DNA of 63,857 nt, the filler included, from Olpidium bornovanus S191 (Eukaryota > Fungi > Olpidiomycota), in assembly GCA_017911155.1 (NCBI GenBank). It is 30 parts of 30 records of this genome, joined end to end, with 100 filler letters (N's around TTAATTAATTAA, not from the genome) between each part and the next. Parts side by side here need not be neighbours in the genome. Positions count along the whole stretch, not along the records: positions 13,579 to 16,798 come from JAEFCI010005980.1; 29 more parts are not named here. The stretch is one strand, 5' to 3'. Every line of letters begins with the position of its first letter. The stretch's first letter is position 1. This document shows, one piece after another, positions 7,294-22,175 of the stretch. The notes under the pieces were generated by a model that was not told the origin of the DNA, made no database searches, and saw only the letters and a program-made list of their open reading frames with translations. The position numbers and the translations under genes were made by a program.

Positions 7294-9498
7294 GGCAAGT
7301 TGCCCCCCGCAGCATGAACGTATCCTGCGTCCCCGCCCACCAACACACTTTTGAGAAGTTCCCAGCCGTGCATCCATCGGGTCTGGCCCCTGCCAAGATT
7401 CATGCTGTTTCTTATTTAAAGGGCTGCATCCCTTGAGTTCCATCTAGGCTCCCTGCGGAGCCCTGCTATTATATGTAACGAACCGCCCCTTCGCCATGGC
7501 CGTCAACCGCTTGGACGAGTGGCGACATTGCACTGCAACATTGTTTTTTTCTTTTTGCAACTCATCATATTCGCTGAGAGGCAATGTAAGAAATTGGTCG
7601 CCATAACGCTGGAGACTGTTCATTTTCGGCGACCCGCATGAACACATTTCAGGAGAGTCCCTGTCGAAGGTTTGCGTTCGGCATATCGCGTTAGGTCCGG
7701 TTCGAAGGAAAAAAAGTATGCGTACTTTTCCACTCATAGTCTGTTCATTCGCATAATTAGCTTGCATATGCAGTCCGCATATTCAGTGAATTTGGGAATG
7801 GCATTCAAACGAAGATGTGCAGTTCCTTTTGAAATAATTATATCGTTCCCCGATTTTGGGTGAAAGGGGTGACAGTAACTCGGAGGCCGGGGGAAGTTCT
7901 TTGGAAAGTTTGTGCTGCGACAATGAGACGGTGGAGACGAATGGATATACGAGGGCGGAAGATGCGTGAAAGCGGATGTTCGCAGAATATGAAACCTTTT
8001 TTTACGATAAGCCGTAAAAACCGAGCCCTTCGCAGATTTGGAAGGAATAACAAGCGGACAGAACAAAGTAAGTGCCGGAAAGAGCGGGTTGGGACACGTG
8101 GAGCGCTCTCGTTGTTGCTGATACGGCGGCGGCAAAGACGACTGGAGAGCGGCAACTAAAAACTACCGACGCTCTCCGCGAAAAAAAACGAAAAATCTAG
8201 CGCAGGCAATTCCCTTCCTCTGTGAAGCCGATTGATCCGGAATTCCAACTTCCATACTGGCTTCCCCTGGCGCAGGAGTATCCGGCCCATCCCGGAAATC
8301 GGCTCATCGTGCACGCCGGCGTTTCCGACCAAACGAAAATCGCACATATCTGGCCGGCTGTGTTGTGGCATCCGCGGGACCTGTCGTAGCGTCGCGGCTT
8401 GCAACAACGTGCCTTGGCGAAAAGTGCAGTCGCGATCGACCACTGCCAAGGGAGGTTCAAACAGGTGGGAGGCAATCGCAGCTTCCGTTTCACAGAGACA
8501 CCGGGCCGTCAAACACGCGGAAAAGGTAGTGAGCGATGAGGATGACGCCGGTCCATGCGAGAACCTGCGACGAACATGCTTGGGACGCCCAGCGCCGGGT
8601 CGAGGGGAAGCGCGGGTCTTTGTCCTGAAACGGCGAAAATTGGGCAAGGGAGCAGCGGGCGTAAGGCGGTTCAGGCGGTCAGTAAAAGTAAACAAGGAGC
8701 GACAGACTCAAAACTCCCTCGCCGCGTTCAGAGAGCCGGCGCTCTGGGATACGGCAGCCGGCCAGGAAACAAACTGAACGGGCACCACTCACAATGCTGA
8801 CCACCCTCCGCGTTCCTGTTTCGGTCGCCCAGCCGTTCGGATATACGAACGACGAGGCCCACGTCCCGCGTCCGTCGGCTTTGCCCTTGCGGCGAAACAG
8901 AAACGGAGCCGCCGGTCGATAAGTGAGGAGCGCGTCTTGGCCAGCAAAGGACGCCCGTTTGCGCCTGCCAAGAGCGATACAGCCGCGTGCGCGCGCGCTA
9001 GCGCGGGAGTCGACAAGCTGCTGCTCCTCCAGAAGGATGCCCGCAGCGGATCGTTCCGGTCGGCACACGGGCCCACCGTCTGGATCAGGGTTTCCTCCGT
9101 CCGCGCGCGCCGCCTCCGGGAAGAGACGCGTTCGCGCAACGGAGGCGTGGCAACGGCAGGTGGTCGACAAGCGGGGCAATATCCTCCTCGTCCCGAGCTC
9201 TCGTGCGCCGCCGTGTCGCCACCGCGTGTTTCTCTCTCACCTTGGCCGGAAACGGCTGGTACCTCAGCTTTGCGTCGAATACCACGGAGCCCATTTGGTT
9301 GCGGGACGCGGGCCGTGCGGGCGGGATATTCCCTTTCTTCGCCCGCGGAAGCGAAAGGCTCCGGGGGTCGGTGTTTCGGAGCGTTTTCGGCGAGTTGCTT
9401 GACTGGGGCCGGGCGAGGGGCGGCGGGGGGGGGAAGAGGGGGAAGCGGGGGGGACTGTTGTCGGGAACAAAGAGAGAGAAGAATACTATAGGTACCGG

Positions 9499-9535
<37 letters not shown>

Positions 9536-9670
9536 GCCGGGGGGGGGGGGGGGGGGGCCCGGGCCCCCCCNNNNNNNNNNNNNNNNNNNNNNNNNNNNNN
9601 NNNNNNNNNNNNNNTTAATTAATTAANNNNNNNNNNNNNNNNNNNNNNNNNNNNNNNNNNNNNNNNNNNN

Positions 9671-11727
9671 AACGCCACGGTACCCGTTCATCCCAGCCCG
9701 CAACAACGGCATTTTCCTCACCCTCGACAGCAAACGAATCCACCCTCCTCGACGCCAAGATGCCTTCGCGCAGCTTCCCTGTCGCAGCATGAAGTTCAAT
9801 CGTGGGATATCGCACCTCGACACTTCCCCTGGTAAAGCCAGTGCTTACGCATTGAATCGCTGAGAACGCAAGCCCGCCTGCGACGCTCGGCTTCGGAATT
9901 CCCGGTTGGCGCGCTGCATGATGCGCGGAATGATGCCAACTAGAATTCCGTGGATGTTAACGACAGGAACTGGCCGCAGGGCCACTTGGTCGCCATCGTA
10001 CTGTGCTGACCTCGTCCTTTATCCACGAAAACAGCTCCTCCTGAGTGTCATGATTAATCAAACTGCACATGTGAAATACTACGTCACGCCGAGTTTTCGC
10101 CGGACGGTGGGCACAACTTGTCTGTGGGCCTCGATAGTTCACTTACCTTTTATCACCATCTAAACCGCCCCTGCTGATGAGCCTGTGGGCCTCTCCGAGA
10201 CTTGAGGCTGATTTTGGCGATTTCATGACGCCGGTGAACGTGCGTGGGATGTTGCTATCTTTGGACAATTGGCCTCTTCGGGTTGCGGGCGACCAGGTCA
10301 ACGAGCGCGGCGACCCCCCAATCGTCGTCGTTTGGGGGCCAAGGTCGCCTCCGGGCAGCGACCCTGAATATCTTGGTCGCTGAGTTGACGTCCGCGAAGC
10401 TGGCTGACCGGAAGCGCCCATTGGTGCGGGTGAGACAACAGGACGGTAACATTGCCTCGATGCCTTCGGCAGCTCCCCCGTTAATCCCGCTTCGGTGGCA
10501 GAAGGACTCGCTGGAAGCTGTCCCGGAGGCGAAGGCGGAAAACGGCCAGCGGGCGACTTCTCGGGAACGGCAACAAATACCGGCTCCGTGATGTCTATTG
10601 GTTTTGCTCTTCCTGTCTTGGTCTCCAAATCCAGCAGTCGATTCGCGGCCGAGGAACCGGGACGCACGGAACTTTGGCCGTCTTCCTGCGCAGCAGAACG
10701 TTCTGTCGAATGGGAGGAATGACCAGTTGTCGCAGCAGAGAGCGGCAAATGCTGTTCTACTGTTTCCGATAAATTTGTGCGTGGATGGTCACGTTCGCCG
10801 TGTTCGGCAACAGCTGATATCGCTCCAGAGTCCGCCAGGACGTCACCAGGACGTCTCTGCGGAGTTGCGGTCAGGGCGATAGCGCCCTGAACTGGTCGAC
10901 TAGCTACTGAGGGTTTTGGGCGCTCGCGGATACTACTGTCTCCAACACATCTGTCTGCCGCCGACGACGCATGCTGGTGGCCATTTACGCCGCCAGTTCG
11001 GTCCGCCACCGCGGGCGCCCTAGGCGGCGGCGTTCTTTCCTACGCACCGCGACAGCGAGGTGGAGATGCCTGGCACGGTTATTCACCGAGAGAGCTGGTT
11101 CTGTCGGCGTCCGGGTTGTGCTCGTACTGCAAACGTTACCTTGGAGACACCCTCCGGACGGGAAGCCCGTCGGAAACTCGCGGCGCTGCTGCCCGGCCCG
11201 TCGCGTCCGTCGCCGTGCACGCCTGGTCGAACGCCGCCGCTTCCTCTCGGCCTCTCCAGACAAGCGTTGCCGCCCTCGTCCGAGTCGTGGTCGGGCGGTA
11301 GCGACATTCCGAATGCTGATAAATCCTCACTCCACCTGTGATCTTCACCAGTGCCAATTAAGGCAGGAGCGAAGCCGGCCGCCGGGGAATTTTTAGCGTT
11401 TTGCGTTCCCGCGGGGGGCGTATCAGGCTGGCCCGCAGGGACCGGAAACCGCCCGGAACTGCCGCGGCCGTTGTCACAATGCCTCACGGAGCGAGGGTTA
11501 GCCGGCGCCGACGCGGCGCGGGCGCGCGATTTCACGCTGGCTGCGGGACGCACGGCGGAAGCGGTCGCGCAGCCCGGCGCACGACAGACCGACGGGCTGC
11601 GCGATGCTTGCCGGAGAGACGTCTCCTCGGCCCGGCGGCGCCCAGGCCCAAACGACCTGCCGACACATTTATCGTAACAATGCAAAGCGCGGTGAACACG
11701 CCGCGGTGAAGTTGGTTGGTCAAGCAT
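9671..11727 (-). CDS. Hypothetical, largely disordered multi-exon protein; 3' partial
   Basis: A long S/P/A-rich exon (ORF 10143..11009) ends at a GTAAGT donor and is followed by spliceable exons SLINHDTQEELFSWIKDE and RANREFRSRASQAG. No family motif. Confidence 0.4.
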
Positions 11728-12009
11728 CTAAGTGATGCGAGGAGGGAAAGAGGGAGAGGGAGGGAAAGGGTCCGCGTTCGTCACCGCCGCTTCGGCGTTT
11801 CGCCATCTAAGGATTACCGACCCCGACCGCCCGGCGCCCCCCCGTGCGCCAAACACCCCCCCAACCGCGCCAACAACTTCCGCGGCCTGTAGTCCTTCCT
11901 GTTCGTATTACGCGTGCAGACACTTCCACTTCTGGAACCTGGAACCAAATCTAATCCAGCATCAAATCCAGCATCAAATAAGTTTATTTTCGTTACGCCT
12001 CGCGCTTCG

Positions 12010-12480
12010 ATGCCCTCGCCGCGCCGTCGGCGCCGCCGCTCACGCGGCCTGGGAGGTACTCCCGCCCCGCCTGCAACGACAGACGTGTTGTCTTTTGCGC
12101 CCGCTGTTGCACCGGTCGCGGCTCCTCTGCCTGTTGACGACGCCGTCGCTGTTCCGGCCGTCAACCCTGTCAATGCGACCGTCTCTTCGCTTATCGATGC
12201 CGCCGCCTTTGCTCTCCCCGCGTCACCATCTCTCGGTGCACACATGAGTATAAGCCCTCTACCGGTCACGGTACCATACATCGTGCCTGAACCGGCTGGG
12301 CTCGACGCCAGTTTTCACGCCCCAAACCGTTCGGGCCTGTCTGCTGAGCAAACCGCTGCTGAGCTTATTCTTTGTCAGCAGAAGGAAGCCGGCTTCGCCG
12401 AGTGGCGCGCCTCCACCGTTTGTCGTGTCGGTGAAGACGTCGCGGCCCGTCTGTTCGCTGATGTTGCTCTCGATTCGCGC
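12010..12480 (+). CDS. Orphan A/P-rich ORF, possibly transposon-derived, abutting the copia integrase in antisense
   Basis: MPSPRRRRRRSRG..ELILCQQKEAGFAEW..; many T-ending codons, unlike the host genes. It runs into copia-derived sequence at a CATG (12480-12483). Confidence 0.3.
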
Positions 12481-12483
12481 ATG

Positions 12484-13478
12484 ACGGAGCTTGCAAGGCG
12501 AAGGAGTTGGCCAAGTCGGTCGTGCCTGAGTCTGTCGCATGCTGCAGTTCCAAGGGAAATGGGAGGCGCTTGGGGCGGAAATACTGTTCGAGCTTGGCCG
12601 GGCAGGAAAGATTTGCGTGTGGTTCCCAAGTATTGTCTGTAGGAGCCTATCCTTTCCACTTAATGCGGAAGGAGTAGCCTTGCACAGGATCATAGCGGTG
12701 ATCGGTGATATGGTCGACAACGTAGATGTCATCCTTGTCGGCGTCAAGAGGAATGTCGGGGTCGGCCAGATCAGGCGAGCAGTCGCCGTGCACTGGAGAG
12801 GGTGGCCAGTCGGCGGGATCGTATTGGTGGGATTCGTCGACGGTCACATCATAGCGCTCGAGAATCTCATCGGTGATTGGGTCCCAAAGTCTGTACCCTT
12901 TAGAAGTGTCAGAGTAACCAACAAGAATGAGTTTCTCACCTGCAGGAGACAATTTGGTCTCACGCTGGTCCCGTGGTAAGTGTGAGTAGCAGGTGCTGCC
13001 GAGGATGCGGAAATGAGACCTATCTGGACGACTGTGATGTGCTGGATCAATCTCCGCGATGAGGAGCTTGAAGTTGATTCCAGAATGAGGAGAGTGGTTG
13101 TAAATCTTGACCGTAGCCAACCAGATTTCGGCCCAAAATCTGGAAGGAAGTCTAGTGGCAACGAGAGTTGCCCAGGTGCGTTCTTCCAACGTGCGGTTGA
13201 GGCGTTCGGTGACTCCGTTCTGCTCTGGTGTGCCGCGAATCGTTTGTTGGCGGACGACGCCGGAGTCGACGAGTTCCATGTCATAGGGGCCGGAGCAGTA
13301 TTCTCGGCCCCTGTCAGCGCGGTGTATCTTGAGAATGCGGCCCGTAACATTTTGGAGTAGATTCTGGGTTGCTCGGAATTTCTGTAGGGCTGTGTTGCTA
13401 TCCTTCATTGGAATTGCAAAAAATTTAGCGTAACGGCTACACTGTTCGCCTGAAAGTAATGACATATTTCTCATCATG
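12484..13478 (-). mobile_element. Ty1/copia element A fragment: integrase core, SH3-like domain and chromodomain (degenerate)
   Basis: HRADRGREY, TPEQNGVTERLNRTL and LVGYSDTSKGYRLWDP, then DIYVVDHITDHRYDPVQGYSFRIKWKG*APTDNTWEPHANLSCPAKLEQYF (12730-12578) with an in-frame TAG at 12647-12649. Confidence 0.93.
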
Positions 13479-13578
13479 NNNNNNNNNNNNNNNNNNNNNN
13501 NNNNNNNNNNNNNNNNNNNNNNTTAATTAATTAANNNNNNNNNNNNNNNNNNNNNNNNNNNNNNNNNNNNNNNNNNNN

Positions 13579-14328
13579 GCGACGCGGACTGGGCGGGTTG
13601 TCGCACAACGAGGGCATCGACGAGCGGCCTGCTCGTCATGTACCAGGAGGGCCCCATATCCTGGAGATCGAAGCGCCAGACGTGCGTAGCCACGTCCTCA
13701 TGCGAAGCGAAGTTCATCGCAGGGTCAGCTGCTGCTCAAGAGATAAAATGGCTGTGATCGATCCTGTCTACATTGGACCCGTCGTCAGTGAAAGCACAAA
13801 CAACGCTCCAGACCGATAACAATGGCGCTGCCGAATTGGCTGGTGATGCCAAGACCTCCAGGCGGTCAAAACACATCGACATAAAGTATTACCATCTGAG
13901 GTGGAGCGTCGCCGAAGGCACGATCAAGATTGAAAGGGTGTCATCGGCTGAAAACCCAGCTGATATCTTCACTAAGCCGCTGGACCGATTAAAGTTTGAG
14001 AAATTCCGCGGTCACATCGGTATGCGCGAGCGAACCGTCCAAACGTGAAACCGCCAGGGCCGCCAAGCCCGGAAGCCTCGGAAAGGTACTCCCCACGAAT
14101 TTGGAGTGACCATGGGCACGGTGCGCTTAGTGAAGAGGGGTGCAGAGAATAAAAGGGCAAAATAAAGGGGGAAGCTTAGACACTGCGCGCACCAGCCTGC
14201 GTTGCCCCTTTGTAGAATCCCCAGCTCCCGTGATATAAAATAGAGCTAGAGCAAACTAGTAAACAAACGCCCAGAACACAAAATAAAGTTCTCCTTTCTT
14301 CGTCTTCGTCTTCGGCCCGGCTCCAACA
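13579..14328 (+). mobile_element. Ty1/copia 3' end: RNase H, PPT (14129-14140) and 3' LTR (14141-14328)
   Basis: CDADWAG..STSG, SWRSKRQ..SSCEA, TDNNGA, RSKHIDIKY and NPADIFTKPL. AGTGAAGAGGGG is followed by TG..CTCCAACA containing TATAAAA and AATAAA. Confidence 0.92.
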
Positions 14329-14697
14329 TCCCCGCCCCCCCCCCCCCCCTTCCCCCGCCCCCCCCCGGCCCGCAATTGGCCGCCCGCCCTGTGCGTGTGG
14401 CCTCGCGCCCCCGCGAGCTGGGGGAGGAGACGCGCGAAAAAAAAAAAAAAAAACAGAAAAAAAAAAGGAAACAACGCAGCGCGGCGGGCGGCGGAAGACC
14501 GGCAGGGAAGCGAAAACCCAGGCGCGGCCCGTGACGGGTGTGCGTGTTGCGTGGCGTTTCGGAGCTGGACGGCCCGGGGGAAAGAGAGCGAGAGGGAGGG
14601 GCGGGCGCAGGTCCGCACCTGTTCTTCCCGCTCGCCGCGGGCGGTCCGGCAGGGGGGCCCGGGGAAAGCAAGGAGAAGGAGAGGGAGGGACGGGGTG

Positions 14698-14900
14698 TGT
14701 AGAAAAAAAAGGAGGGGGGGAGGCGGAGCCGTAAACGCACCCGCGTTAGCCCTGCGTAAATTCCTTAGTTACCGCCATATAAAATAGGGCCAGGGGAAAC
14801 TAGAAAAACAAACACCCCAAATACAGTTATCCTTTCCTTCCCGTTCTTTCGGGCTCGCGGTATACGCTGCGCCTTCGCCTTCTTCGGCTCGGCTCCAACA
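14698..14900 (+). repeat. 5' LTR of copia element B
   Basis: TGTAGA..CGGCTCCAACA. It shares ATATAAAATAG.GC.AG.G.AAACTAG.AAACAAAC.CCC and TCTTCGGC.CGGCTCCAACA with the LTR at 14141-14328 and is followed directly by a PBS. The left boundary is approximate. Confidence 0.8.
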
Positions 14901-14914
14901 GGTTATGAGTCCAG
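14901..14914 (+). promoter_or_regulatory. Primer-binding site complementary to the anticodon stem-loop of tRNA-iMet (half-tRNA priming)
   Basis: GGTTATGAGTCCAG directly after the LTR CA end. It is the reverse complement of the initiator-tRNA segment GGGCTCATAACC with one G-U pair. Confidence 0.85.
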
Positions 14915-16898
14915 GGGGACCGCCCTGACCACGAATCGCGGAGCTTACCGCCGAAGAAGCAGAGGACAAAAAGAAACTTTGCCGTCCGTCGGCAACTGCG
15001 CGAAAAAGTCCTCTCGCCTTTCGCCGCCCGTCGGTGGTGTCCACGGCACCATGAGCGCAAACAGCGCCCTCTTCCCAGTCCGCAGAAGCACGGGGAAATC
15101 ATCCACGTGCACTTCGTTGGCCCATTCCCGAGGCCATCCTCGGGAAACCGCTACGCGTTGACCTTCGAGAGGGGAGGTCACGCCACGCCTGGGCATATTG
15201 CATCCCAAACAAGCAGGAGGCAACTACCCATGCAGCGTTGATCGATTACCTCCCATACGTGGAGCGGCAACTTAACGCCACCCGTCAAAACTCATAGGTC
15301 GGATCGAGGCAGGGAGTTTGCGGGGGGGAATCCGAAAGAACCCGAAAAAACCCGAATCCGAAAGGGCCCGAAACCCGCGGGATCCGCCAAGAAACGACCA
15401 TACGTGAAACTCCCCAGCAAAACGGGATAGCTGAGAGGATAAACCGCACCCCTGGCGGAAAAATCGAGTGCGCTCCTTATGACGGCCAACCTGCCCGTCA
15501 AGCTCTGGGACGAAATGTGGAGAACCGCCGTATACCTTTAAACTGATCCCCCTCATTGCGGCATCGATGGTCAGATCCCGCGTCTGGTCTTCACCGGGCG
15601 TACCGACCTGAACTTCGGTCACCTCTGTTAGGTCAGGAACATGGCCTACGCGCACATCCTGAAGGCAAAAAGGGACGGGAGCGCAGGAAAATCGAAGCCC
15701 GCGGCGGAAAAGAGGGTTTTGGTGGGTTACCCGACCTCCAGCAAAGGGTATCAGCTAGGGGACCCATCCGGCAACTCAATCATTGAAAGGTATGAGGTGA
15801 CCATTGAGTCCAAGATGTACACGCTGCCGGAAGATGCCTCCGATGACTGACGAGGCGTGGCAATAATGGAGGAGGGTCCCAGTGCCCAAACAAGGACGGA
15901 GATCCTCACGCACATGTATGCGAAAGGAGGAGCCCCACGTTTCAAGGCAAAATGGACTGATGACACTGTCAGCTGGGAAGAAACACACACGCTCCCTGCC
16001 GAGATGGTCGGAAATTATTTCAAATTGTCAAGCCTCCCGACACCGCCGGATATCGAAGACTCCATGACTGGTTCTGTCCTGGAACAGGCGCTGGCCGCGG
16101 CGGCTGGCCTCGCCCAGGGTCAGTCTGTCGCTTAAAGCGAACCCTCTACGGGTTAAAGCAGAGTGGCCTGGTGTGGAATCAATGACTACACGAAGAGCTA
16201 ATGGCGCTCGGGTTGGTACAATCCCCGTTGGAACCATGTGTCTATACCCTTCGGGAAGGAACAACGACACAGCTTGTAATAGCCGTGTACGTTTGACAAT
16301 ATACTACTCACTGGACCAAGCGAAGAGGCCGTGTCAAAATTTGAGAACTCCTTGGCTGAAAAATTCAATATGACATACGGAGAGGATTTGACGTTCATCC
16401 TGGGAACCGCAGTGACCACAACCGCCAGTATGCGACTTCTTGACCAGAAACACTATATTACAAGTGCTCAAAAGGTTCGGCATGCTGGACGCAGAACCCG
16501 CCGTCACGCCGATGGAAAGCGGCATTATAGAGAAGCTGCAAAGGACCACAGACGCGGACGCGAGCGACCAAGCAAAATACGCCGAAGCTATATGGTCACT
16601 CCTGTGGATATCAATGATGACGCGCCCTGACATATCGTTTGCCACCTCGTTCTTTCCCCAATCATCACCAACCCCACCCATGGGCATTGGGCGGCAGTCA
16701 AAAGTGATGAGGTATTTGCGTGGAACAATTTGACTTGGGGATCACGCTTGAGGGAGGGCCACACCACTCCAATGAGCTCGGGACATTCTGTGATGCGANN
16801 NNNNNNNNNNNNNNNNNNNNNNNNNNNNNNNNNNNNNNNNNNTTAATTAATTAANNNNNNNNNNNNNNNNNNNNNNNNNNNNNNNNNNNNNNNNNNNN

Positions 16899-17378
16899 CA
16901 TGACTTCCACGGCGTCCTCTCCTGCCGGGAAAAGGTGCACGTTCGCTGCGGCGTTCACGCGGCAGCTGTTCAGGCACGCCGGACTGAAATCCGTCAGGTA
17001 CGTCCTGCTGGCCCCGCAGACGGCGGCCGCCAGGCCGGCCAAACCGGTGCCTGACCCAAGCTCGAGCACGACGCGTCCGCTGACCGGTATCTCGCCGTCG
17101 TCGAGGAGCCTGGGCCGACGTTGAAATCATTATTAGACGAGTTCGCCGAAACCGCGGGTGCGACCTTAAACCAGGCAAACGGGGAAGACTCCCGATACGC
17201 ACCTGGCCAGCGCCCGGGCGGCGCCCCAGGTCTTGAAGCCGATGTCGCCTTCGGCAAGTCCCGGCTCCTTGACAGACAGCCCGACGCCTCTCCGCGGCAG
17301 AGGCCACTCCCGCACAACGGCGCCAGTCGCCGCGCGGCCGCACAGGTGGGCTATGACGGCCGCGACCCTGTCCGGTAT

Positions 17379-17415
<37 letters not shown>

Positions 17416-17723
17416 GTGTCCCCTGCGCCGGTATTCTCCGCGACCGCCGCCTCCGCCTCGAGAGATCCTCCGCGCGGAGGATTGCCGACCACGGCGAGGA
17501 GCCAAGCGAGGGCGGGGCGCGGGACCGTCGCCGCGAACGCCGCCCTGCACTCGAGGAAAACGGGGTCGGTGGAGTCCGCCCCGGCGGGGTCGTAGAGGTA
17601 CATCCGCACGAGCGACTCGAGCTCTTCGAGCAGCGCTACCACCGCGGCGCGGCTGGACCTGTCGCAGTCCGCCAGGCGGTCCAGCAGTCCGTCGAACCGG
17701 TCGCCGCGCCCGGCGCACGCCAT
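16899..17723 (-). CDS. Seven-beta-strand protein-lysine methyltransferase, METTL21/Efm2-like; 3' partial
   Basis: EPGLAEGDIGFKTWGAARALAR|LLDDGEIPVSGRVVLELGSGTGLAGL (motif I), YLTDF and NAAAN; one GT-AG intron ~17112-17185. Confidence 0.85.
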
Positions 17724-18476
17724 GGCGAACGGCGGAGCGGCGGCGGGTGTTTGCCTGGCTTCGGTTCCGTACGCCTCTCCGCCGCCTCGGAGAGTTTCCC
17801 GGGAATTACGAGTGGCCCGCGCAGCGTGTTTCCAAATGCGTTTTTTTTTTTTTTTTTTTTTTTTTCCGTACAACAACTCTCCCCTCCCCTCCCCCCCAAC
17901 CAAACAACACCAACAGCAACAAACAACAACGACATCAACGACAACATCAACAAAAACATCCCTCCAAACTTGGCGGACGGGGAGATTTCTTGTTCCCCCC
18001 CCCCCACTCTCCGAGGGTTTTCTTTCTCCCTGGAGGAGAAAAGGGGAGCTCGTCTAACCCCTCCCCGTGGTGCTCCCTGTGCACCGCTCCCGGACCCAGC
18101 AGGGCCTGCTTGAGTTTGACTTCAGGTAGGCATCCCACGTCTTTGCAGCTGCGGCAGCAGCAGCAGCACGACTCCTCCGAGCGGGACGTCCGCCGAGGCT
18201 CGTTTGAAGTGGCGTGGTCAAGACGTGTCGCGTACGCGCCTTCGCTTGCAGCCGACAATTGAACCGCGGGCTCTTTTGATACGTGCATTTATGTTCTCAG
18301 ACACTCCCTGGTACCCCAATTTTGAGTCTCGCGCACATTGTAGGATTACAAGAACAAGAATCGAACACTCCCCATGNNNNNNNNNNNNNNNNNNNNNNNN
18401 NNNNNNNNNNNNNNNNNNNNTTAATTAATTAANNNNNNNNNNNNNNNNNNNNNNNNNNNNNNNNNNNNNNNNNNNN

Positions 18477-18860
18477 CATGCGAACTATGACGCAATTTCT
18501 CACAAAGCATCCAACGCAAATCTTTATGCAAACTCGGACACGGAAACCGAATCAAATTATCTATAAACCAGGAGCAGGTTCGGACGCGGAGTCAAGTACA
18601 GATTTAAAAGCAGAATCAGCCCCGGATTCACAGGCATAATGTGACGCAGCTTCAGAGGCAAAATCAGATGCGTATTCAGGGACAAAATATGAAACGGATT
18701 CAGAAGCAGAAACTGGCGCACATTCTGATTGCAGAATTCTGATAAAGACACAGATTCTGCAGTATTCAATGCAACAACCGACGGAGATTCAGATGCGGAA
18801 TACGTCGCAGATTCAGAGGCAGAAGTTGATGCGGATTCAGGCGCGGACTCCTACACGGAA
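18477..18860 (+). repeat. Degenerate ~12-nt periodic repeat encoding D/S/E/A-rich peptide, broken by stops and frameshifts
   Basis: Recurrent GATTCAGA(G/T)GC; translates as SDAESSTD.., TDSEAETG and DSDAEYVADSEAEVDADSGADS. Confidence 0.55.
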
Positions 18861-19466
18861 CGCGAACAAAAAGAAAAGTCCGCCGCCGGACCCCGTAGCG
18901 AAAGAGGAAAAACCACGGCCCGCCAATTTACCGACGCGCGAGAAATAAACGTTGAGAATAAGAACGCGCTCTTTAAGAAAGCTCCCGCCGGAGGGGAGGG
19001 GAGGGGGGGAAATTTAAAAAAAAAATCGGGATCGCGAGCGGGAGACCTCGGGGTACCGCCGTCGCCTTCCGACTTCGACCGCCGCCAGCGTCGCACCCTC
19101 TCTCGTGCCGGGACTCAATGATCCTCCCCGTGCACACTTCCCCACCTCCACTTCTTTCAAACCTCCCCGCCCCAACCCACTCCACACACACACACACCCC
19201 GCCGCCCGACCATGTTTCCCTTACCGTCATTCTTTCCCACTCGCCGATGCCGCGCGGCACACAACCCGCCCTTTGTCGCCCGCCCGCCGAATACCCGACA
19301 TTCCGCGGTGTACTCGGCCATCATCCCTTTGCCGACGAAGAAGCAAGCGATGTATCAGAAGTCCAATTTCATCGATGCAAGATAAAACGGACATCGCATT
19401 GCACATTGAATTGTAAAATTTGGTATATTTGTGTTTCGGGGACTATGAACCAAACAAATTGGATGC

Positions 19467-19653
19467 CCTTGGACTACGCTACTGGAGGAATTTCAGCTGG
19501 CTACAAAGGGAACGTAGTTCAAATGGGGGGAGGCCCTCGGACCTACGCTCCTACCGGAGTTTTGGCTGCCTACGCACCCGGTTTGCCGGGATCAGAGAGG
19601 ACGTAGTTCTAATTGGGGGGGGGGAGGCCCTCGGACCTACGCTGCTACCGGAG
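19467..19653. repeat. Three degenerate direct repeats with core CCCTCGGACCTACGCT..TACCGGAG
   Basis: Copies at ~19467, ~19534 and ~19628. The last two share ACGTAGTTC..ATTGGGGGGAGGCCCTCGGACCTACGCT. Confidence 0.75.
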
Positions 19654-19753
19654 NNNNNNNNNNNNNNNNNNNNNNNNNNNNNNNNNNNNNNNNNNNNTTA
19701 ATTAATTAANNNNNNNNNNNNNNNNNNNNNNNNNNNNNNNNNNNNNNNNNNNN

Positions 19754-22175
19754 GATTTCATTACCGCTTACCTAAATTCCCCTTTGGACCGACCCATCTA
19801 CATCCAACAGATCAAAGGCTACGAAGAATTTCCTGATGACGACACAAAGGGCTACCTCCTCCGCAAAGCCCTGTACGGGCTGAAACAATCCGCGCGTTGT
19901 TGGAACGCTGATTTGGACACTACCCTCCGCCGACTCGGCTTCCACCCCATGCGCGCCAAACCATGCTTATACATTCTACGAGGCGTGCCCCTCTCGACAC
20001 ACGGGGGGGCACAGACTCAGACTGGCGCTGATAGTGATGCCGAGAAACCCGCACCTCCCGATGAGTCCGATGACAACTCTTCTTTTCCTGAATTTGAATT
20101 TTCTGAATTTCCTGAATTTGGATGCACCGATCCCGAACTCCCACCCTTTTCTACTATTTCCTTTTTACTTTGCACATGGGTCGACGACATTGTGCTCACG
20201 GGTCCCGCTCCCACCATTCTCAATTCCGTCACTCGCGCACTCCATGACAGGTTTCCTTTGTCAGACGGCGGAGCCCTCACACACATCCTCGGGATACAAG
20301 TGCTCCGCGACTGCAACACCAACGTCTTCCTTGCACAGCGGCAGTACATCGAGCACATCCTCAACAGGTTCAACCACACCAGCTGTCATGCCGATCCCCT
20401 TCCATTCGATCCATCCGCCATCTCCACCCTAACACAGCGGACAGATGTCGCCCCGCCAACCGAAAAAGCACGGTATGCCGAACTAATCGGTTCCCTTATT
20501 TACCTGTCCACACGCACCCGTCCGGACATTGCAACCGCAGTCGGCTTCCTAAGCCGCTTCACCGCCAATCCGTCCGCCGTGCATTGGAACGCGCTGAAGC
20601 GCATACTGCACTACCTTCTGTAGTGGACACTCTGTTATTCCCTCATTCCTCCGCTCAACGCATTGCCTTCCATCAATGTACCGTTCGACCTTGATGCTTT
20701 CCGTTCGATTTCGATACCTCTCGCTCGACCTCGAAGCCCTTCACTCGATCCAGATGCTCTTCGCCTGACTTCGATACCCACCGCTCGAGCTTGATGTACC
20801 GCCCACTTCTCCTTATTGTTCGGGCCCCCAATCGAGGGGGGCCCAAGTACGTAAAACCCCTGGTGTCCCCTCTTCTAATAAACACAAGAAACCTTCGCCG
20901 GACACACCACCCACAACACTTCGCGGCACGGCAGAATTTGGACTCTGTTTTCCGCGGGAGCAATTCACCGACACCGCACCACACATTTGCGCGTACGTTG
21001 ACAGCGACTGGGCCTCAGCTGTCAACGACAGAAAATCAATTTTTGGATACATCATCCAGTTAGGCGCCCGCAACACAGACACCGACCGTCCACAAATCCG
21101 CCCGCAACACAGACCCCGACCGCCCAAAATTCTCCTGCGCAGCTGTCATTTGGCGCAGCGGCAAGCAGCCGTGTATCGCGCAGTCTTCAGCAGAGGTGAT
21201 CGCGGCGTCAGAGGCCTGTCGGGAAATCTCGTGGTTCCGGCATATCAGCAAAGACATCCTCGGCGATCGCAGCCCAGTCCCACTTTACATCGACAACCAC
21301 GGCGCGATTGACATCGCAAAAGACACGCGCAGAATTAATAAACGCTCAAAGCATATGGACGTCAGGCATCTTTACGTTGGTGAAGTCGCATCAGATGAAA
21401 AAATCCTTCCAATCGCCATCGCGTCAAAAGACAACGTCGTCGATTTGTTCACTAAAGGTCTCCCGCGCCCCGACTTTGAGCGCCATCGACTCGCCATCGG
21501 GGTCACCCCCGCACCATACAACGAGACCACGTGAGGCTCCGTCGTCGACAAGGTTCCATCATGCGAGACACGAGCCGGTGCACCACCAAACTGTTCCCTT
21601 TCTTCTTTTCTCTCTTCCCCTTCCTCCTTTTTTTTGTCATACACGATACGAACCGGAAGTACCGCAGAAATTTCCGAAATTTCTTCTCCTCTTTCTTTTA
21701 CCACTGAATTCTATTCTCCTTTTTTTGCTTGAGACACTTTTTCTCCCTCCCTGTTCTTTGGACTCGGACTTGAGGTGGGGTGTTGGTACTCAAGCCCTCT
21801 TCCCGCTACCCTCCGAAAGTAGTTGCCACAACCCGAACAGAAAATAAATCAAACACATAACCAAACCACATTTTCGGCTACCGTCTCCTTTCTTCGCCCA
21901 CGCGTCACGCGTTGTGGTCACGCGTTTAATTTCCGCTCCGCAGCTTGGTTCCGCGACGGAATGAGTCGATATTTTAGCCCCTTCTCCTTCTCGACACGTC
22001 CCCCTCTCAGCTCCTATCCGCTCGGTCCTTTCCTTCCTCGCCTATTCTGCCACTGCTACTGGAAATTCTTCCACAACGGGTCCGCTACCTGCCATCCTAT
22101 GCTTTGTCTCATTGAGCGCCATGTAACCCCGCCCCCTCGACATTGAGAGGGTCTCAAGGCGTTTCAACCCCAACA
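19754..22175 (+). mobile_element. Ty1/copia element C, 3' half: RT, RNase H, 3' UTR, PPT (~21772-21780) and 3' LTR (21781-22175)
   Basis: DFITAYLN, LRKALYGLKQSARCW, WVDD, TRPDIATAVGFLSRF, YVDSDWA, RSKHMDVRH and DLFTKGL. GAGGTGGGG precedes TGTTGG..CCAACA, a perfect 6-bp terminal inverted repeat. Confidence 0.93.
20619..20918 (+). mobile_element. Solo LTR (300 bp) inserted into the RT of element C, with 4-bp TSD CTTC
   Basis: TGTAGTGG..CCACAACA (7/8 inverted repeat) flanked by CTTC at 20615-20618 and 20919-20922, with an internal AATAAA. Removing it restores ILHYLRGTAEFGLCF. Confidence 0.9.

Follow-up and report, generated by a model that had tools for sequence, protein, structure and literature searches.

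The stretch analyzed here (the window, 63,857 nucleotides [nt] in 30 joined parts) comes from the Olpidium bornovanus S191 assembly, and its part at 13579-16798 carries a decayed Ty1/copia retrotransposon, which we call element B, with a chromo-like domain behind its integrase. This part (3220 bases) is letter-identical to NCBI contig JAEFCI010005980.1 of the binned assembly GCA_017911155.1. Between the remnants of the integrase (IN) and those of the reverse transcriptase (RT) and RNase H (RH), element B contains a stretch that is very probably a divergent sequence of the chromodomain superfamily, to judge by sequence comparison. We favor the reading, at even chances, that element B represents, in defective form, an Olpidium Ty1/copia family in which a chromovirus-derived chromo-like domain (CHD) ends the integrase and intact copies would have the order IN-CHD-RT-RH (coordinates are collected in Table 1).

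The probable identity of the domain is drawn from its relatives. A phmmer search of 1.84 billion representatives with the element B stretch returned a single genuine relative, the metagenomic protein P0004 (E = 8.7e-4, calculated over all 1.84e9 representatives), of which P0005 and P0006 are close kin. P0001 to P0003, which score above P0004, were rejected as spurious, being long repeat proteins in which weak matches add up. P0004-6 have a common layout, in which an rve core is followed by a GPY motif (GPY/F-type integrase tail), the chromo-like domain and, at once, a stop codon, and they match the Pfam Chromo profile over positions 2-52 of 53 (E = 7e-5 to 8e-4; 19.8-23.2 bits versus a gathering score of 25.1). 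A hidden Markov model (HMM) of P0004-6 alone scores element B at 34.8 bits over residues 27-74, with the best of 2000 shuffles at 5.8 bits, and of the six-frame pieces of the contig, this is the only one with a score. At the sequence level, the domain is thus homologous to integrase-attached chromodomain-like sequences, and the LPxPPD....G tail that follows it in element B is common to the metagenomic integrase-chromodomain proteins. When element B and P0004-6 are combined in a four-sequence profile, chromodomains make up 18 of the 23 matches in the Protein Data Bank (PDB; best E = 1.3e-3), those retrieved being of cpSRP43, HP1, CHD1, Clr4, MPP8, and CBX. Furthermore, for element B alone, the top three named clusters by ESM language-model features are all Chromo (score of 0.90 and 172-179 features in common; the untrimmed piece scores 0.88), and AlphaFold2 with a four-row alignment predicts the secondary structure E-E-E-H, i.e., three strands and then a helix, at a predicted local distance difference test (pLDDT) score of 54.6.

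The metagenomic family of P0004-6 is very small: among 5.8 billion proteins, it comprises only three clusters. Their source stretches are L001 42-404, L002 76-519, and L003 2-1045, with Nextera adaptor sequence at both ends of L001, and their conserved C-terminal tail reads K-I/L-P-L-P-x-D-L-x-E-A-F-Q-G-stop. The corresponding string in element B, PPDIEDSMTG, was also considered as the RT motif DVxxAFLxG; this was rejected, since the same tail ends the open reading frame (ORF) in P0004-6 and the RT fingers are absent.

Element B is copia-type, with IN before RT and RH, an RVT_2-type RT, and a copia SH3-like integrase tail. The initial annotation had proposed the order IN-CHROMO-RT-RH on one contig of a copia element, and translation and Pfam matches bear out both points for what we call the chromo-like stretch: the IN remnants (15090-15808), the chromo-like domain, RT, and RNase H follow each other on the + strand, with IN upstream of RT-RNase H on one strand as in Ty1/copia, and the copia assignment rests on the SH3_retrovirus match, the RVT_2 fragments, and this order. 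The peptide strings quoted in that annotation are also found where it placed them, namely, RSDRGREF (frame 1), TIRETPQQNG (frame 0), and ERYEVT (frame 1, 15786-15803) in the integrase, EILTHMY...NYF at 15899-16021 (frame 1), and LYGLKQ (frame 0), TRPDIS (frame 2), and FCDA (frame 0, at the end of the piece) downstream. The chromo-like domain is in frame with the SH3-like integrase tail, which is well preserved: frame 1 is open over 15632-16132 except for one TGA, at which a related copy reads a sense codon. Both element B and this copy read 14 codons beyond the position at which the ORF ends in P0004-6, making the domain internal rather than terminal.

What the initial annotation left out is the decay of the element. 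Stops and frameshifts are numerous, and the coding remnants occupy three different frames; gag and protease (PR) are missing, and the integrase core begins only about 190 bases past the long terminal repeat (LTR), with no IN zinc finger upstream and with H at the position of the first catalytic Asp. There is one LTR in element B (14740-14900), the 3' LTR falling past the contig end. Lacking gag, PR, and a second LTR, element B is a defective copy, which is not evidence against its Ty1/copia membership. The RT lacks the first ~110 RVT_2 profile positions and has a broken YVDD box (YV-stop, ~16285-16296). Because of frameshifts, RVT_2 is seen only as two subthreshold fragments, at 16114-16182 (E = 1.3e-3, profile positions 110-132 of 244) and at 16295-16465 (E = 3.6e-4, positions 169-225 of 244). 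With the first ~110 RT positions gone, the short distance from the chromo-like domain to LYGLKQ is a deletion product and not the native spacing; the IN-CHD-RT-RH order is present in element B, with this deletion at the CHD/RT junction.

To compare element B with other copies, contigs from four public runs were aligned to the piece at a threshold of ≥85% identity. In these contigs, other copies depart from element B after 15087. Within the integrase core, element B has a 26-nt imperfect tandem duplication (GAATCCGAAAG...) at 15328-15379, and a contig of the organism B run has 79 other letters in place of 15257-15358 (102 nt).

The favored reading can be put as a series of steps. Element B would be a dead, internally deleted copy of a family whose integrase carries the chromo-like domain ~30 residues past the SH3-like domain, between IN and RT; a deletion in this copy would have joined the module end (16116) to mid-RT, and intact family members would read IN-CHD-RT-RH. 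A chromovirus 3' end may have been the source of the domain, as the tail that ends chromoviral pol is retained and is here read through. In active copies, by analogy with chromoviral chromodomains, the domain would anchor the integration complex at a chromatin feature, and the module has the orientation and position in which a chromodomain attached to an integrase could be expected to work. The aromatic cage looks incomplete: in an alignment of this decayed copy, one of the three cage positions is kept (the central Trp of KAKW), position one aligns to a nonaromatic residue, and the loop bearing the third position is shortened. With one position of three, classic methyl-lysine binding is not to be assumed, and the ligand may be something other than H3K9me.

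Several results weigh against this reading, beginning with the nature of the domain itself. For 15851-16132, no stop-free piece has a Pfam Chromo (PF00385) match at E ≤ 10, and a single-sequence PDB search with the element B stretch yields no chromodomain, only chance antibody (Fab) matches. The AlphaFold2 models are poor (pLDDT, 45.7 with the single sequence and 54.6 with the four-row alignment), and with the resulting low-confidence model, Foldseek searches of the PDB, wide VIA-align searches, and Atlas shape searches give no meaningful match. All of this would be expected if 15851-16132 were not a chromodomain but a fast-evolving copia IN-RT linker, or another small fold that resembles KW...WE, as would the scores of the relatives below the Pfam gathering score (20-23 versus 25.1 bits) and the two of three cage positions that are nonaromatic by alignment. 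Such an explanation is, however, hard to square with homology to P0004-6 far above chance, with the match of these proteins to the whole Chromo profile (E down to 7e-5) right after their integrase, with the predominance of chromodomains among the joint-profile matches, and with the Chromo clusters that head the language-model results for element B alone, and we regard it as quite improbable. The chromodomain that the initial annotation had placed at 15899-16021 is therefore supported indirectly, through homology to P0004-6, the joint profile, and ESM features, and not through any direct Pfam or PDB match; of the fold check that it had suggested, the E-E-E-H order fits, while the searches with the predicted fold come back without a match.

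Further points against the favored reading concern the bond between the domain and the copia integrase. The module is multicopy: the organism A runs contain it in records 3, 5, and 12 and the organism B run in record 21, and these copies match element B only over 15808-16116, with other sequence beyond both ends. They run on for 151, 208, and 565 letters without alignment to the integrase and RT flanks of element B, and both module edges lie no more than 2 nt from the end of the SH3_retrovirus match and the start of the RVT_2 match, respectively. The nearest relatives of the domain are gypsy-type and not copia-type. Neither an intact IN-CHD-RT relative nor a new family member came out of the metagenome scans, the IMG/VR scans, a profile word-index search, or a query for exact matches to the SH3 ORF. 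Moreover, the comparison of element B with the related copy, for which 28 of the 40 differences are listed and underlie all codon and position counts, gives 18 nonsynonymous and 4 synonymous codons and no sign of purifying selection; this looks neutral, fits an old fossil, and is uninformative on past function. Of the same 28 differences, 22 are transitions and 8 lie in CpG context, and 15 occupy third codon positions of frame 2 instead of the chromo-like frame 1 (chi-square, P ~ 0.07), a skew that is probably mutational noise.

These observations could also be accounted for by a chimeric fossil, in which ~300 nt from the pol 3' end of a chromovirus (Ty3/gypsy), or from another chromodomain element, became lodged between copia IN and RT remnants through template switching, ectopic recombination, or nested insertion plus deletions, and no functional copia element ever had the domain. 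The coincidence of the edges at 15808 and 16116 with the SH3_retrovirus end and the RVT_2 start speaks for it, as do the closest relatives, which are ORF ends with a GPY/F integrase and a chromodomain, the further damage in element B (two or more other large deletions and numerous frameshifts), and the RT being out of frame with the module. On the other hand, the module shares orientation and frame with the integrase tail and sits at the functional site, the stop expected at the chromoviral pol end is absent both in element B and in the related copy, and within element B there is neither a GPY/F remnant upstream of the module nor LTR-like sequence downstream of it; there is also a natural precedent for copia plus chromodomain. 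We consider this chimeric origin rather unlikely.

The two module boundaries differ in what the favored copia-family reading has to assume. Records 4, 6, and 13 match element B exactly across 15881-16403, so the junction at 16116 is real, and this right-hand boundary is easily explained as a private deletion of element B. The left-hand boundary at 15808 needs local identity below 85%, another rearrangement, or a different context in the other copies. The proposal of the initial annotation that a clade had acquired the domain ancestrally goes beyond these data, as element B is one decayed, multiply deleted copy and the other copies share only 15808-16116 with it.

The assembly itself is also a possible source of error, as a misjoined path through repeat copies, or sequence of another eukaryote, would make the architecture or the host wrong, an explanation partly orthogonal to the others. 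The source of GCA_017911155.1 was nonaxenic zoospores from cucumber roots, binned by tetranucleotide composition into 13,695 contigs and 29 Mb (PMC7865070). Given the nonaxenic sample, the composition-based binning, and a contig that is short and repeat-only, Olpidium is only probably the host of JAEFCI010005980.1. The RNase H motif DADWAG stands at the contig start (13579-13600), and its beginning recurs at the contig end (16780-16798) as ...GTFCDA. With the same motif at both ends, the 3.2-kb contig resembles a path on which the assembly cycled through a single LTR-element family, and its order of 3' part, LTR, spacer, LTR, and 5' part looks like such a path and not like two independent neighbors. 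Also weighing against the favored reading, none of the contigs of the four public runs is an exact independent contig across 15808. Against an artefact, two independent 2025 runs hold exact contigs of the piece at 15160-15369 and 15881-16403, the latter including the junction at 16116, the sequence near 15808 is not low-complexity, and a second Olpidium contig bears a related copia element. An artefact thus appears very unlikely to us.

That second contig, JAEFCI010008655.1, encodes a related copia RNase H tail at 279-746 (61-66% amino acid identity), and no chromo-like module is found in its 3 kb. A soil metagenome run has an exact 230-nt match at 13826-14055, and in a 2012 run labelled as a different organism, a 2.7-kb contig is 95% identical over 13580-14338 at a very high depth (~660), indicating that the copia family is abundant and present in other Olpidium-containing samples.

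Upstream of element B, the contig begins with the pol 3' end of a copia element, which has one in-frame stop (13755-13757 by translation) and ESM features at 0.95 to copia, integrase, and RNase H clusters; the Olpidium database record P0008, a "Copia protein," is further evidence for this assignment. The only annotated gene of the contig, BJ554DRAFT_8034 (P0007, "hypothetical protein," 13748-14048), is this copia RNase H tail, and its modelled intron skips the in-frame stop, indicating a transposon fragment annotated as a gene. The two LTR-like repeats belong to one LTR family, as contigs of other runs bridge 14300 to 14879, and other LTR copies share ~30 more letters before 14740 (unaligned contig ends in the public runs). 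The spacer between the repeats may be flanking DNA or assembly filler; its poly-C tract has a depth of ~9,000-21,000 in every run compared, the soil metagenome included, which is typical of low complexity. Scans of 13579-16798 for tRNA genes and Rfam families found none.

Table 1. Features on contig JAEFCI010005980.1, in positions of the window
Feature	Position	Strand	Evidence or remark
Copia pol 3' end (C-terminal part of RNase H, from DADWAG)	13581-14048	+	Translation; TGA at 14046-14048
Purine-rich tract resembling a polypurine tract, then LTR-like repeat ending ...GGCTCCAACA (3' LTR of upstream element)	14142-14328	+	Alignment with 14705-14900
GC-rich low-complexity spacer	14329-14704	no strand	Poly-C at 14330-14366, poly-A at ~14440-14470, GA/GGGA runs
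Element B	~14705-16798	+	From 5' LTR to contig end
Second purine-rich tract and LTR-like repeat (5' LTR of element B), ending ...GGCTCCAACA	14705-14900	+	Alignment with 14142-14328
Primer-binding-site-like GGTTATGAGTCC	14901-14912	+	Directly after 5' LTR of element B
Integrase core remnants (including RSDRGREF, TIRETPQQNG-IAER)	15090-15630	+	Frames 1, 0, 1; rve_3, E = 4.6e-3
Copia-type SH3-like C-terminal integrase domain	15644-15808	+	Frame 1; PF25597 SH3_retrovirus, E = 6.4e-10, 39.2 bits versus cut-off of 27
Shared module	15808-16116	+	87-89% identity, ungapped, with other copies in public runs
Single frame-1 stop (TGA) between integrase tail and chromo-like domain	15848-15850	+	Related copy has CAA (15848 T>C, 15849 G>A)
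Chromo-like domain (predicted strand-strand-strand-helix at 15899-16021) and conserved tail LPxPPD....G	15899-16072	+	Homology to P0004-6
RT remnant (LKRTLYGLKQ; TRPDIS)	16114-16700	+	Frames 0, 1, 2; RVT_2
RNase H start (...LGTFCDA)	16711-16798	+	Translation; ends at contig edge

Among known systems, the closest in architecture are the Ty1/copia elements CoDi-A and CoDi-I of the diatom Phaeodactylum tricornutum, which have a putative chromodomain at the integrase C terminus (Llorens et al. 2009, PMC2774666; cited in PMC5348765 and PMC11541908). Compared by architecture only, both cases are copia-type; with IN after PR and before RT-RH and a putative chromodomain at the IN C terminus, the CoDi elements read IN-CHD-RT-RH, as intact copies of the Olpidium element would. 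They differ in host, a diatom versus the zoosporic fungus Olpidium, and in that the Olpidium case is one dead, deleted copy whose nearest chromodomain relatives are gypsy-type integrase tails. Integrase-chromodomain fusions are also found in chromoviruses, in oomycete Chronos, and in several Ectocarpus gypsy lineages (PMC5348765, PMC11541908, PMC12477816). With these, element B has in common a chromodomain-like module directly after the integrase C-terminal domain, and its post-helix tail is shared with P0004-6. Unlike in chromoviruses, however, IN lies upstream of an RVT_2-type RT and has a copia SH3-like tail, and the polyprotein frame continues past the domain instead of ending with it; the GPY/F motif expected of an RT-RH-IN-CHD chromovirus is absent from element B and found only in the metagenomic relatives. 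As to the cage, Group II/CRM-type chromoviral chromodomains are described as having no aromatic cage residues (PMC3059260, as cited in PMC11541908). Element B, in which only the central cage Trp is kept and the loop of the third position is shortened, resembles them by functional analogy only, and by the same analogy, targeting by a domain of this type, if any, need not use methyl-lysine.

The novelty implied by the initial annotation has to be narrowed. A copia element with an integrase chromodomain has already been described in CoDi-A/CoDi-I (PMC2774666, PMC5348765), and full-text literature searches turned up no chromodomain reported for a fungal copia element. The architecture is thus not new in kind and, if confirmed, would add a new host group, probably through an independent capture. 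That a copia lineage in Olpidium independently captured a chromovirus-type chromodomain, the first case reported in Fungi and only the second anywhere after the diatom CoDi, is a possibility that we rate a little short of even. Within this independent-capture reading, the module copies in different Olpidium samples would mean that the fusion was transposition-competent.

The present evidence is a lead from one fossil copy and not an established clade, as a single copy cannot show a lineage-wide layout; an IN-CHD-RT architecture across the lineage is plausible, with the chances equally divided. The textbook example of how retrotransposons steer their insertion into particular chromatin is the fusion of a chromodomain to the integrase, and Olpidium is a key node of fungal evolution whose repeat content is almost unexplored. 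Such fusions are known several times in Ty3/gypsy and only once in Ty1/copia, in the diatom CoDi elements. If true, the fungal case would show that this solution also works with an integrase in the middle of the polyprotein, and CoDi and the Olpidium element would form a natural pair for comparing targeting logic.

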